Shown here: positions 16,246 to 21,930 of the stretch, one piece after another
Numbering within the stretch: position 1 is the stretch's first letter
How the letters are laid out: the number at the start of each line of letters is the position of its first letter
Source of the DNA: Podarcis bocagei
Lineage: Eukaryota
NCBI GenBank assembly: GCA_964188305.1
Contig: OZ076886.1
Reading direction: 5' to 3' (one strand)
DNA: 64,000 bases
Translations under genes and position numbers: made by a program
The notes under the pieces: model-generated
Seen by the model: the letters and a program-made list of their open reading frames with translations, nothing else
Told to the model about the DNA's origin: nothing
Database searches by the model: none

Positions 16246-16654
16246 TTGTTGTTGTTTTTTTAAATCATATTTATTAAGAGTTTTAGAATTACAGAAAAAA
16301 CAGAGAAGAAAAAGAAAGAGAAAAAAAACAAAAGAGAAACAATCCACAATCAAACAATACAAATTGATAAAAATCAAAATAAAAAAATAAAAACAAAGCA
16401 CATAACACAACACAATCAAAAGGCAAAAATAAGCCACAAAAATTTAAAAACAAATCCAATATTCTCAAATCCTTATCTGTCATTACCTTCTTTCTTTGAC
16501 CTTCTCACTCCTCCCTTTTTTGTATCCTAATTGTTAATAGTCACAGCAAATCCTTTCCATTTTTCATAATAGAATCATAGAATCATAGAATCATAGAGTT
16601 GGAAGAGACCACAAGGGCCATCGAGTCCAACCCCCTGCCAAGCAGGAAACACCA

Positions 16655-19576
16655 TCAGAGCACTCCTGACATATGGTTGTCAAGCCTCTGCTTAAAGACC
16701 TCCAAAGTAGGAGACTCCACCACACTCCTTGGCAGCAAATTCCACTGTCGAACAGCTCTTACTGTCAGGAAGTTCTTCCTAATGTTTAGGTGGAATCTTC
16801 TTTCTTGTAGTTTGGATCCATTGCTCCGTGTTCGCTTCTCTGGAGCAGCAGAAAACAACCTTTCTCCCTCCTCTATGTGACATCCTTTTATATATTTGAA
16901 CATGGCTATCATATCACCCCTTAACCTCCTCTTCTCCAGGCTAAACATGCCCAGCTCCCTTAGCCGTTCCTCATAAGGCATCGTTTCCAGGCCTTTGACC
17001 ATTTTGGTTGCCCTCCTCTGGACACGTTCCAGTTTGTCAGTGTCCTTCTTGAATTGTGGTGCCCAGAACTGGACACAGTACTCCAGGTGTGGTCTGACCA
17101 GAGCAGAATACAGTGGCACTATTACTTCCCTTGATCTAGATGCTATACTCCTATTGATGCAGCCCAGAATTGCATTGGCTTTTTTAGCTGCCGCGTCACA
17201 CTGTTGGCTCATGTCAAGTTTGTGGTCAACCAAGACTCCTAGATCCTTTTCACATGTACTGCTCTCAAGCCAGGTGTCACCCATCTTGTATTTGTGCCTC
17301 TCATTTTTTTTGCCCAAGTGCAATACTTTACATTTCTCCCTGTTAAAATTCATTTTGTTTGTTTTTGCCCAGTTCTCTAATCTGTCAAGGTCGTTTTGAA
17401 GTGTGATCCTGTCCTCTGGGGTGTTAGCCACCCCTCCCAGTTTGTTGTCATCTGCAAATTTGATCAGGATGCCCTTGAGTCCATCATCCAAGTCGTTGAT
17501 AAAGATGTTAAATAAGACCGGGCCCAAGACAGAACCCTGTGGCACCCCACTAGTCACTCTTCTCCAGGATGAAGAGGAACCATTGATGAGCACCCTTTGG
17601 GTTCGGTCAGTCAGCCAGTTACAAATCCACTGAGTGGTAGCAGAGTCAAGACCGCATTTTACCAGCTTCTTTACAAGAATATCATGGGGCACCTTGTCAA
17701 ATGCCTTACTGAAATCAAGGTAGGCTATATCCACTGAGTTCCCTTCATCTACCAGGCTTGTAATTCTGTCAAAAAATGAGATCAGGTTAGTCTGACATGA
17801 CTTATTTTTCAGAAATCCATGCTGACTATTGGTGATCACAGCATTCCTTTCTAGGTGCTCACAGACTGTTTGCTTAATGATCTGCTCCAGAATCTTCCCT
17901 GCTATTGATGTCAGACTGACTGGGCGGTAATTATTTGGGTCCTCTCTTTTCCCCTTTTTGAAAATAGGGACAACATTTGCCCTCCTCCAGTCTGCCGGGA
18001 CTTCGCCTGTTCTCCAGGAATTCTCAAAGATGACTGCCAGTGGTTCTGAGATCACATCTGCCAGTTCTTTTAATACTCTTGGATGCAGTTCATCTGGCCC
18101 TGGAGACTTGAATACATCTAAACTGGCCAAGTATTCTTGTACTATCTCCTTAGTTATTCTGGGCTGTGTTTCCTTTGCTGAATCATTTGCTCCAAATTCT
18201 TCAGGTCGGGCATTGTTTTCCTTATCGGAGAAGACTGAGGCAAAGAAGGCATTGAGGAGTTCAGCCCTTTCTGTGTCCCCTGTTTGCATTTCACCATCTT
18301 CTCCTCTGAGTGACCCCACTGTTTCTTTGCTCTTCCTTTTGCTACGAACATACCCATAGAAGCCTTTTTTGTTGCTTTTAACCTCTCTAGCAAGCCTGAG
18401 TTCATTCTGTGCTTTAGCTTTTCTGACTTTGTGTCTACACGTGCTGGCTATTTGTTTGAATTCCTCTTTGGTGGTTTCCCCCCTTTTCCATTTTTTGTAC
18501 ACATCCTTTTTTAATCTTAACTCAGTTAAAAGTTCTTTAGATAGCCACCCTGGCTTCTTTAGGCACCTTCCATGTTTCCCTCTCATTGGTATTGCCTGAC
18601 GTTGTGCTTTTAGTATCTCCCTCTTAACAAACTCCCAGCCATCATGAACTCCCTTTCCTTTTAGTATTACTGTCCATGGGATCTCACCCAGCACTTCCCT
18701 AAGTTTTATGAAGTCGGCTTTCTTAAAGTCAAGAAATTGAGTCCTAGTATGCTTGGCTGCTCCTTTCCGCTGTATAGTAAACTTCAGAAGAGCATGATCA
18801 CTCGCGCCTAATGATCCTTCCACTTCTACCCCACTAACCAGGTCATCAACATTGGTTAGGACCAGATCTAAAATGGCTGTTCCTCTTGTTGCTTCTCCCA
18901 CTTTCTGGACAATGAAGTTGTCTGCAAGGCCAGTGAGGAATCTGTTTGACCTTATGCTCTTGGCTGAGTTTGACGTCCAACAAATATCCGGGTAATTGAA
19001 GTCCCCCATTACTACTATCTCCCTTCCTTTTGCATGCTTGGCCATCTGTTCCAGGAAGGCATCATCTATGTCCTCCGTTTGGCTTGGGGGTCTATAGTAA
19101 ACTCCCACAATGAGGTCTCTGTTATTCTTCTCTCCCTTAATTTTGACCCAAATGCTCTCACATTGGCTTTGAGGTTCTAAATCTTGGATCTCTTCACAGG
19201 TATACACATCCCTGACATATAACGCCACTCCTCCTCCTTTCTTGTCTGGTCTGTTTCTCTGAAATAGATTGTATCCCCCCATTATTACATTCCAATCGTG
19301 GGACTTATCCCACCAGGTTTCAGTGATGCCTATTATGTCATATTTAGTTTGCTGTACCAAGAGCTCAAGCTCATCTTGTTTATTTCCCATGCTTTGCGCA
19401 TTAGTGTACAGACATTGAAGTCCATTAATCATTCCCCCGTGTCTCTTATTTAAGGATTTTTTCCTCCCACCACTAGGTCCGCGTGCTGTTTGCTCCATTT
19501 GGTCTATGACATTTGGATGATCATCTTCATTAATTGATAGACTCCTACCTTCAGGAGCACTGTCTCCCTCCCCCAC
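16655..19576 (-). CDS. CR1 ORF2: APE-type endonuclease plus reverse transcriptase
   Basis: 973-aa uninterrupted frame. APE motifs YTNAQS, ITETW, GDFN, LDLVL, SDH; RT motifs [30 protein letters not shown]. The listed start is GTG; the first ATG is at 19498. Confidence 0.95.
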
Positions 19577-19581
19577 ATTAG

Positions 19582-20610
19582 TCAGTTTAAAGCCCTCCTG
19601 ATGAGGTTTCTGAGATTTTTGGCAAAAACATTCCTCCCAACCGTTGTGAGGTGCAGCCCATCACTTGCCAGAAGTCCATCTTCAAGAAACTGCAGTCCGT
19701 GATCTAAGAATCCAAACCGTTCCTGTTTACACCATTTGCGAAGCCAGCTGTTCACTTCCACTATTTTCCCCTCTCTCCCTGGGCCACGTCGTTCAACTGG
19801 GAGGACAGACGAGATGACAATTTGTGCATTTAGTTGCTTCAATTTCCTGCCGAGAGCCTCGTAGTCTCTTTTGATCTTCTGGAGGCTATTGCTTGCAGTG
19901 TCATTGGTTCCCACATGAACCAAGAGGAAGGGGTATTTGTCAGTGGGTTTTATGATTCCTTGCAGTCGTTCAGTTACATCTTGGATCTTAGCCCCGGGGA
20001 GACAGCACACTTCCCGAGACATCTTGTCAGGCCCACAGATCACTGCTTCTGTTCCCCTCAGTAGGGAATCCCCTATCACCACTACACGCCTCCTCTTGGG
20101 TTTGGTCGGGGTTCTTCCGTGAGCTGTCCGTTCCAAGGTCGCCTGCACATTCCCTGAGGACTGACTTTGCTGCTCGTCTTCATATACCTGATCGACTGTA
20201 ATGAGGGAGAGATCCTCAAATGGAGTCTGCTCTTCGTCTTCCATGCTAGGGGAGAGGACCTCAAAGCGATTGTGTATTTCTAAACAATCAGAGTGAACCC
20301 TGGGCCTCCTACTTCTTTGAGTCACGTTTCTCCATATATCTGGCTCCTGTGTTGATGAACTAGCCTCCTTCTCAGGGGAGTCCCCTGTCTCCTCCTTGGT
20401 GGGGACGGTGTGCTCTGTTGCTTCCAAGAAGAGCTCCAGCTCTCTAATTCTTTGGAGCGTAGCTACACGTTCCTCCAGTTGCTGGACTTTGTCTTTTAAA
20501 AGGGCAATCAACATGCAATTGCTGCAGGTGAAGCTGCCTGCAACCTTTGGCAAGATGGCAAACATTGCGCAGGAATCGCAGGCGACTGCAGCTGTTCCCT
20601 CCCCTTCCAT
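19582..20610 (-). CDS. CR1 ORF1: zinc finger/leucine zipper plus SGNH esterase
   Basis: CDSC-x14-CSNC zinc finger, heptad [26 protein letters not shown] motif, SGNH blocks GDSLLR, LPGA, HVGTND, DGLHL. Start is probably the ATG at 20610 (MEGEG) or 20655. Confidence 0.9.
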
Positions 20611-20936
20611 CTTGAGATCGTGTTGTTGGGGGTGGCTACAGAGGTCCTCCATCATAAAAAGCTTGAAGACAGGACAAATAACTTCGCCCACAAAAAAAAC
20701 CCTAGGTCTCCCCCAACAAACGTTTGAGACTAGCTCCCCTAAATCTAAAAGATGGATATAACTGCGCGCGCCGCTAGGCGCGCGCCGCTGCCCTACAAAC
20801 TCTGATAAGCTCCTCCCACAGCTAATCCCCTGCCTCAACAGAAACCCTGCCCCCTCTGACCTTTACACAGGGAAAACAGCTAATCAGCCACAAGAAACAC
20901 ACACACACAAGAAAACCCTTTTTGCTCCTTCTTCAA

Positions 20937-21024
20937 CTGCTGCCCTGCAGCAGTTGAATAATATTCTGTCATTACATTACCTGCTGCCCTGCAGCAGTTG
21001 AATAATATTCTGTCATTACATTAC
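20937..21024. repeat. perfect 44-bp tandem duplication at the CR1 5' junction
   Basis: ctgctgccctgcagcagttgaataatattctgtcattacattac occurs at 20937-20980 and again at 20981-21024. Confidence 0.95.
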
Positions 21025-21297
21025 CTTAATCTATTTTAACCTTATCTTACTATAAAAGACCCTAAAACTTAAAACTTAGATCTTATTTATACCAATTTCT
21101 CATAGCCATAAGATGTTCTTACATAATTCTTTTAACATTTTTGCTAAAGTCAAATAATTTCATTCCAACATTTTTCTAACATTCATCAATTTTATAGGGC
21201 AATCCTAATAATTTTTTCTTCTTCCAATTTTCATCCAGCGTCTCTTCCTCCTGGTCCCGGGTTTTGTCAGTCCTTTCTATCTCATCAATCTAGCGCA

Positions 21298-21930
21298 TTA
21301 ACCTGGTAATCTTATGTCTGAGGCCCTTAAGTCTCTTCCATGTCCCTTCCGCGGCTCTTCTTCATATTTATACCTGTACTTTACTTTGTCTCCTGCTCCT
21401 TTCACTCGTGGGAACTCCAACTTGACAGTGTTTTTGACCCTTCTCGACAAATCAATCCCTTTTCCATAGTCCACACTAAACTCCATGTGGTATTTAAAAA
21501 CATGTTTCAAAGTCCCTCCAGAATTAAGAGCCCCCACAACCCCAAACATCTCACGGCCCATTGCCAGACTTGAAAAGTCCAAACATTTCTGCATAGGGGG
21601 GTCTATCCAACCCCCCATTTCCAAACCAAACCAGACTTTATCTTTCCAAATCTGGCTTTTTCCAAGTTCATTTGTCAGCTCCAAGTACTCATGTTTCTGC
21701 TGGGCCACAGCTCCCTCCATCTCTGGCGCCCGAGGTTCAACAACATCCTCTTCCCTCATCTGATCTGTCAGAGCACACTCCTGATTTGATTCCTGGGTGG
21801 GCTCTATATAGTTACCCACTACCTGTCCGAAATTTCCGATCGCAGCAGTCATCAAGTCCATCTTCTCATGTAGCTGTTCCAGTAGGGCACTTGTTTTGCA
21901 GAAAGCACTCATCAGAGCTTCTGAATACAT
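21298..21930 (-). CDS. 210-aa ORF of the L1-derived element (ORF1-like N-terminal coiled coil; function unknown)
   Basis: ATG-initiated open frame in the element's sense orientation; heptad-like LLEQLHEKMDLMTAAIGNF; acidic linker. Confidence 0.5.
   Translation of the reverse strand: MYSEALMSAFCKTSALLEQLHEKMDLMTAAIGNFGQVVGNYIEPTQESNQECALTDQMREEDVVEPRAPEMEGAVAQQKHEYLELTNELGKSQIWKDKVWFGLEMGGWIDPPMQKCLDFSSLAMGREMFGVVGALNSGGTLKHVFKYHMEFSVDYGKGIDLSRRVKNTVKLEFPRVKGAGDKVKYRYKYEEEPRKGHGRDLRASDIRLPG

Follow-up and report, generated by a model that had tools for sequence, protein, structure and literature searches.

How the second open reading frame (ORF2) of a long interspersed element (LINE) is translated from a bicistronic RNA is a long-standing question that has been answered only for SART1 and, in part, for human L1 (PMC5009743, PMC3708506). 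The same question is raised by a CR1 LINE that lies in a 64,000-nucleotide stretch of DNA from the lacertid lizard Podarcis bocagei (assembly GCA_964188305.1, contig OZ076886.1), the whole of which is referred to here as the window. Among retrotransposons, CR1 dominates in birds, crocodilians, turtles and many squamates (PMC4316615, PMC13343379), and a paper of 2013 that deals with recoding in CR1-clade elements calls the mechanism of ORF2 translation unclear (PMC3708506). An initial annotation of the window had proposed that ribosomes reach ORF2 by slipping into the -1 frame on a T_TTA_AAC heptamer at the end of ORF1, thereby joining the ORF1 esterase to the ORF2 endonuclease (EN) plus reverse transcriptase (RT) in a gag-pol-like fusion. 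Such a fusion is strongly supported by the comparison of junction sequences described below, and it is highly probable that the ORF1/ORF2 junction of this intact element carries a programmed -1 ribosomal frameshift site, one that looks ancestral for the CR1 elements of jawed vertebrates; the pseudoknot or hairpin that had been put forward as its stimulator found no support in the comparison.

The element and the parts of its junction are as follows.

16569..20930, minus strand: full-length CR1 LINE, apparently intact, with both ORFs open; the 3' end is well defined and the 5' end approximate.
19582..20655, minus strand: ORF1, 357 amino acids, the TGA stop being included in the coordinates; translation is from the ATG at 20655, with an alternative ATG at 20610.
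19585..19591, minus strand: slippery heptamer T_TTA_AAC in X_XXY_YYZ phase, made up of the last base of an Ala codon and the final two sense codons (Leu-Asn).
19582..19584, minus strand: ORF1 stop TGA, directly 3' of the heptamer, in the sequence GCT TTA AAC TGA.
16655..19591, minus strand: ORF2 frame, -1 relative to ORF1, with 978 codons from the shift site to the stop at 16657-16655.
19496..19498, minus strand: first AUG in the ORF2 frame, 31 codons past the shift site and a possible alternative start in the lizard copy.

The layout of the junction had been read correctly at the outset: the in-phase heptamer at 19591-19585 stands immediately before TGA with ORF2 in the -1 frame, and that frame is open upstream to 19660, where a -1-frame TGA (19663-19661) leaves an overlap of 79 nucleotides, and has its first ATG at 19498. 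The length given for the fusion, 1318 amino acids from ATG 20610, was obtained again on recomputation (342 + 976), and the corresponding figure from ATG 20655 is 1333. At the -1-frame stop that bounds the overlap in the window copy, essentially all RNA reads and contigs of other copies read CGA (a plus-strand A>G at 19663), so the overlap is longer than 79 nucleotides in the family as a whole and the stop is private to the window copy.

The presence of one in-phase heptamer within the 79-nucleotide overlap of a single element is only mildly unlikely, at about 5% by a rough estimate, and the ORF1 in the window contains two further in-phase X_XXY_YYZ heptamers far upstream; for these reasons the case rests on comparison across lineages. 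Eleven junctions were compared in all, that of the window lizard and those of ten fetched loci, which were chosen by ORF1 protein similarity with the heptamer playing no part in the choice. The lineages sampled are the lacertid lizard, a turtle, a snake, two birds, three frog elements, a stingray and two ray-like elements, and the ten fetched junctions read as follows.

L001, Chelydra (turtle): GCT TTA AAC TAG
L002, Dendrobates (frog): GCT TTA AAC TAG
L003, Erythrolamprus (snake): GCT TTA AAC TAG
L004, Calypte (bird): GCT TTA AAC TAG
L005, Pygoscelis (bird): GCT TTA AAC TAG
L006, anuran-type contig, 63% to Xenopus ORF1: TAT TTA AAC TGA
L007, ray-like contig: ACT TTA AAC TAG
L008, ray-like contig, 56% to Hemitrygon: GGT TTA AAC TGA
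L089, Hypanus (stingray): TGT TTA AAC TAA
L092, Hyla (frog): TGT TTA AAC TAG

Every one of the eleven has T_TTA_AAC in phase with a stop at distance 0, and in each of them EN-RT is encoded in the -1 frame, which runs without a stop from the heptamer into the endonuclease. The three stop codons, TGA, TAG and TAA, are all represented at this one position, which indicates that a stop as such is maintained there. The alignment of junctions that had been proposed as a check on the conservation of the heptamer thus returned an invariant heptamer, phase, stop and -1 ORF2 from stingray to bird. The statement that CR1 ORF1s often end in ALN* was likewise borne out, as most full-length ORF1 homologues among 123 retrieved proteins (81 + 42) end in xLN. 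Other in-phase heptamers across the lineages are scattered, without positional conservation, and one decayed copy (L091) has the same layout with a single substitution in the heptamer.

Conservation beyond coding need was assessed by a synonymous-site control on nine of the eleven ORF1s, which share 28-58% amino-acid identity (mean 37%); synonymous sites had been part of the proposed check. Of 30 invariant degenerate columns just two are served by a single codon, and these are the heptamer codons, TTA in all nine ORF1s and AAC in all nine; the remaining 28 use two to five codons, and five other invariant Leu columns use three to five each. TTA is a minority Leu codon, accounting for 32 of the 306 Leu codons in the nine ORF1s. 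The codon before the heptamer specifies Ala, Tyr, Thr, Gly or Cys, always with T as its third base, and about 22% of the codons in ORF1 are NNT. Expressed as information content, positions -7 to 0 (the heptamer and the first base of the stop) carry 2.0 bits each, against less than 1.1 bits at most of the positions on either side. Judged from these alignments, what goes beyond chance is the distance of 0 to the stop in all eleven lineages together with the invariance at synonymous sites.

A wider scan of metagenomes added 80 loci (L009-L088), nearly all of them from one sample, Ga0065711, with avian-looking junctions; as many old copies of few families, they served to represent those families and were not counted as independent cases. 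The sample itself, filed as a JGI 'metagenome', has contigs of up to 79 kb that are full of CR1 copies with penguin/hummingbird-type junctions, and most of its DNA seems to come from a vertebrate, bird-like host. No relatives were found when genome-contig and viral-contig collections were scanned with ORF1 profiles. A more distant PHD-esterase CR1-like element (L090:2380-2658, GCA_037975485.1) is without the heptamer, its ORF1 ending GGG TTC TGA, and its ORFs are separated, with ORF2 beginning at an AUG 62 nucleotides further on in another frame; the signal is therefore tied to one arrangement and not to the other. Among esterase-bearing LINEs, L090 represents a contrasting solution.

The same eleven junctions also allowed the possible start codons of ORF2 to be examined. 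Downstream of the junction, the ORF2 frame has its first AUG after 16 to 94 codons, at a position that is not conserved, and neither a SART1-type stop-start overlap nor an AUG next to the ORF1 stop is present in any of the eleven lineages. In the turtle this AUG is at amino acid 95 and the catalytic YTNA/FANA motif at 53, in Dendrobates the two are at 64 and 58, in the snake at 93 and 50, and in L006 too the AUG falls past the EN catalytic motif, so that initiation at an AUG cannot yield a complete EN in these elements. Pygoscelis, L007 and L008 each have a stop in the -1 frame 3-6 nucleotides upstream of the heptamer, which confines any change of frame to 13-16 nucleotides containing the heptamer.

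These findings bear on the alternative that ORF2 is translated separately, through termination-reinitiation, non-AUG initiation or internal entry past the ORF1 stop, with the block of heptamer and stop being kept for some other RNA-level reason, such as termination context or a binding site. Precedent speaks for this, as the LINEs that have been studied use reinitiation or coupling (SART1, with UAAUG) or an AUG-independent mechanism (L1) (PMC3708506, PMC5009743), and the lack of strong structure 3' of the site, the AUG 31 codons downstream in the lizard copy and a conserved G-rich tract that could serve reinitiation are all in keeping with it. It would, however, leave unexplained the X_XXY_YYZ phase, the invariant T before TTA and the position of TTA and AAC as the sole invariant codons, and it has to contend with the absence of an AUG at the stop and with a first AUG that wanders from lineage to lineage. 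The known reinitiation motifs, moreover, lie upstream of the stop, whereas the conserved tract of CR1 lies downstream of it. Separate translation of ORF2 is accordingly considered unlikely, and programmed frameshifting is preferred.

What might stimulate such frameshifting involves two further features, both 3' of the heptamer.

19563..19574, minus strand: G-rich purine tract GGGGGAGGGAGA, which starts 10 nucleotides after the heptamer and reads Gly-Glu-Gly-Asp in the ORF2 frame.
19542..19572, minus strand: candidate structure of the initial annotation, in which GGGAG (19572-19568) or AGGAG (19546-19542) pairs with CTCCT (19557-19553); it is weak and lineage-specific.

The downstream string quoted for the candidate structure was found at 19573-19537, and the pairings envisaged in it, a pseudoknot or hairpin of GGGAG/CTCCT/AGGAG and AGAC/GTCT that would stimulate frameshifting in the lizard, exist in the sequence; the minimum free energy (MFE) fold even uses GGGAG:CUCCU. 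MFE values and z-scores were obtained for the 60 and 100 nucleotides after the heptamer at 15 junctions with ViennaRNA, which cannot score pseudoknots. The best fold in the lizard is a stem of 5 bp with a G-U end that begins 12 nucleotides after the heptamer, and its energy is that of shuffled sequence (-10.8 kcal/mol over 60 nucleotides, z = 0.10 against 200 dinucleotide shuffles; z = 1.17 over 100 nucleotides). Bird and ray-type elements do have a GCTCC...GGAGC-like hairpin 25-35 nucleotides downstream, but the frog, the snake, L006 and L007 are near-pure purine over the 60 nucleotides (MFE -0.9 to -4.7 kcal/mol) and offer the G tract no partner to pair with. A pseudoknot as the general stimulator was dropped, since the 15 junctions have no conserved fold, and it is quite improbable that a pseudoknot or hairpin stimulates frameshifting in the lizard. 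What is conserved is the linear G-rich tract: a GGG run starts 9-11 nucleotides past the heptamer in all eleven lineages, within a linear sequence of the form GGGG-N-AGGG-N-GA, in which the first Gly is encoded by GGG in 10 of the 11 and the codon of the second Gly is free at its third base.

It is very improbable that the heptamer is a mere by-product, without a translational role, of a conserved Leu-Asn C-terminus of the ORF1 protein (ORF1p), of shared ancestry and of codon bias. The xLN ending is found in nearly all ORF1p homologues, the elements are homologous, and many old bird copies retain the heptamer simply by descent, yet the codons of other invariant residues, the five Leu columns included, have been scrambled, and the residues before LN vary while the third base stays T. 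Only 2 of the 48 codon combinations for N-Leu-Asn are slippery, and the phase of ORF2 and the adjacent stop are invariant as well. Given the varied codons elsewhere and the fixed T before TTA, the Leu-Asn C-terminus is better read as the result of a constraint at the RNA level than as its cause.

RNA-level evidence came from two raw RNA-seq runs whose species label is shared with the best-matching DNA samples. They cover the whole element, with a depth that rises toward its 3' end, as expected with many 5'-truncated copies, and that is about 40 reads per run in the bin holding the junction (19480-19623). The reads stem from many near-identical copies, in both orientations, and indicate for this reason that RNA of the family exists and not that the window copy is active. 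No insertions, deletions or joints were seen at or near 19585-19591 in the two runs at a 5% threshold, which rarer events would escape. Three-base runs, for their part, are too short for efficient polymerase slippage. With these two points against it, a fusion of the frames in the RNA itself, through editing, splicing or transcriptional slippage on T3A3, is extremely unlikely, even though T3A3 is a short homopolymer pair and some mobile elements do use transcriptional slippage (PMC5009743). Elsewhere in the element, five reads of run X24 join 17582 to 20786, omitting 3203 nucleotides between non-canonical ends (TT..GC), which suggests an internally deleted CR1 derivative at another place in the genome and not splicing.

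Several observations weigh against programmed frameshifting itself. No conserved or unusually stable 3' secondary structure was found in the 15 junctions, where z-scores cluster around zero, and a canonical four-tract G-quadruplex is absent within 70 nucleotides in the 11 lineages, two-tetrad motifs being present in some only; the efficiency of frameshifting may therefore be low. The spacing of the putative stimulator, at 9-11 nucleotides, is longer than the usual 5-9, and because the G-rich tract keeps the phase of ORF2, the conservation could be that of the peptide G-E-G-D and not of the RNA. In the lizard copy AUG 19498 precedes EN, so that independent initiation is possible in that copy. 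Several of the fetched copies have a decayed ORF2, that of the snake, for example, stopping after 383 codons, and the eleven lineages are not fully independent, as they share descent and horizontal transfer between distant hosts is possible.

That slippage takes place, and how often, is inferred; what the sequences themselves show is the anatomy of the junction, how well it is conserved, and that several lineages have no AUG that could serve. Under programmed frameshifting, ribosomes would translate ORF1 into the esterase protein and arrive at the heptamer, where the P site would hold tRNA-Leu paired with UUA and the A site tRNA-Asn paired with AAC; from there the majority would proceed to the adjacent stop and release ORF1p. 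A minority would slip one base back (UUA to UUU, AAC to AAA) and resume with CUG or CUA in the ORF2 frame to produce an ORF1p-EN-RT fusion, which from ATG 20655 would be the product of 1333 amino acids. Two conserved parts of the signal, the stop that abuts the heptamer and the G-rich tract 9-11 nucleotides downstream, probably set its efficiency. ORF1p and RT would in this way be made in proportions resembling those of gag and gag-pol, and every RT would be tethered to an ORF1p able to assemble together with free ORF1p on the same RNA.

A more specific proposal is offered tentatively and is, on present evidence, rather doubtful: that CR1 RT has been made as an ORF1p-ORF2p fusion at U_UUA_AAC-stop since before the ray-tetrapod split, and that the structure-less G-rich tract, lying at the edge of the mRNA entry channel, stimulates slippage via a bound protein, either a host G-tract binder or the Cys-motif ORF1p, with a self-regulating ORF1p:RT ratio as the consequence. 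If this were true, CR1 would represent a third distinct solution to the translation of LINE ORF2 and its tract a new type of eukaryotic frameshift stimulator.

The remaining parts of the element are those of a typical CR1.

about 19636-20004, minus strand: SGNH/GDSL esterase domain in ORF1 (PF13472, E = 1.8e-9, above the gathering cut-off).
about 18794-19402, minus strand: APE-type EN of ORF2 (PF03372).
about 17306-17956, minus strand: RT of ORF2 (PF00078).
16569..16597, minus strand: 3' terminal 8-nucleotide microsatellite, (GATTCTAT)n on the element strand (Tandem Repeats Finder: period 8, 3.6 copies, 100% matches).

Pfam matches in the element are thus to the esterase, EN and RT, and its assignment to CR1 follows from an ORF1 with an esterase, an ORF2 with APE-type EN and RT, and a short 3' microsatellite without a poly(A) tail. 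A 3' end formed by an 8-nucleotide microsatellite is usual for CR1. The open frame of ORF1 spans 19582-20838 on the minus strand, and the N-terminal part of ORF1 has a Cys motif and a coiled-coil-like region; its esterase matches the structure of the ZfL2-1 ORF1p esterase (4c1b, E = 2.5e-23). Protein matches to ORF1 were found in Podarcis muralis (95% identity) and Zootoca (82%), and the upstream ATG at 20655 agrees with the annotated start of the Podarcis protein.

Just upstream of the CR1 ORF1 region is a perfect 44-bp tandem duplication (20937-21026, 2.0 copies, 100% matches), which could be CR1 5' untranslated region or flank, and further upstream, on the minus strand, an ATG-started ORF of 210 amino acids at 21301-21930 gave no match in a Pfam scan. 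Directly 3' of the CR1 tail, the stretch at 16250-16560 (minus strand) is T-rich, with low-complexity A/G repeats at 16293-16339 and an A-rich run near 16250; it is probably left over from another retroposon, the CR1 having inserted into it or next to it.

Among the retrieved proteins, some CR1 ORF1s turned out to be mis-filed or merged with other genes (P0046, P0092, P0032, P0039 and P0062). CR1 ORF1 is filed publicly as a bacterial 'SGNH/GDSL hydrolase' of Klebsiella pneumoniae and Pseudomonas aeruginosa, on short contigs that are probably contamination, and elsewhere it has been merged into host gene models, namely a NUBP1 isoform, a steryl-sulfatase isoform and the 'Replicase polyprotein 1a' of Varanus.

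In the full-text literature searched, outside which lie the original CR1 papers of 1997-2003, no account of frameshifting in CR1 was found, and open papers devoted to CR1 or its ORF1 (2013 in Nucleic Acids Research, 2014 in Mobile DNA, 2014 and 2026 in Genome Biology and Evolution) make no mention of frameshifting, overlap or slippery sequences. The non-LTR (long terminal repeat) elements treated in a 2016 review of recoding are HeT-A, TART and L1 only (PMC5009743). If frameshifting is indeed how ORF2 is reached, CR1 uses a retrovirus-like gag/gag-pol strategy in which the esterase-bearing ORF1p is tethered to RT, suggesting a route to cis-preference, and the combination of heptamer, stop and G tract would be a simple sequence marker of coding competence. 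Genome annotation would be affected too, since at present it starts ORF2 at arbitrary internal AUGs or merges it into gene models of the host. The block of 7+3 nucleotides with its G tract also forms a compact cassette that is well suited to reporter testing.

Among known systems, the closest in sequence is the ORF1a/1b signal of coronaviruses and arteriviruses (U_UUA_AAC, G_UUA_AAC), to which the CR1 heptamer is identical or near-identical and with which it shares its phase. In those viruses the shift yields a minority, C-terminally extended polymerase fusion. They differ from CR1 in having an H-type pseudoknot 5-7 nucleotides downstream and a stop that is not adjacent, whereas the CR1 stop abuts the heptamer and is followed, at 9-11 nucleotides, by a linear G-rich tract without conserved structure. 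A heptamer directly before the 0-frame stop, as in CR1, is found at sites of the luteovirus/dianthovirus type, such as G_GGU_UUU UAG of barley yellow dwarf virus. Those sites depend on adjacent structures and long-range pairing, and no comparable feature was found in the CR1 junctions.

In strategy, the likeness is to the gag-pol of retroviruses and LTR elements, where, as is proposed for CR1, RT is made as a low-abundance fusion to an upstream protein by -1 slippage on a heptamer; a 2003 survey placed pol in the -1 frame in 28 of 51 animal LTR elements (PMC5009743). CR1, by contrast, is a non-LTR LINE, has a coiled-coil/esterase ORF1p in place of Gag as the upstream protein, and has no protease to separate the fusion. 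For the downstream tract the nearest parallels are protein-stimulated: a few stimulators located 12-15 nucleotides 3' of the shift site are linear or structured RNAs that act with trans-acting proteins (PMC5009743). In arterivirus nsp1beta/PCBP frameshifting on a C-rich linear motif and in cardiovirus 2A frameshifting, the stimulator is likewise more distant than usual and can be linear, as the CR1 tract is, but that tract is G-rich and not C-rich, and the resemblance is one of layout only.

SART1, with its UAAUG, and human L1, with AUG-independent reinitiation, face the same problem as CR1, that of obtaining low-level ORF2 product from a bicistronic LINE RNA. CR1 has neither a stop-start overlap nor a conserved start codon, and has instead a phased slippery heptamer with ORF2 in the -1 frame, which, as the sequences are read here, would be a -1 slippery site of the classical sort, in a class of element new to it and in an atypical 3' context.

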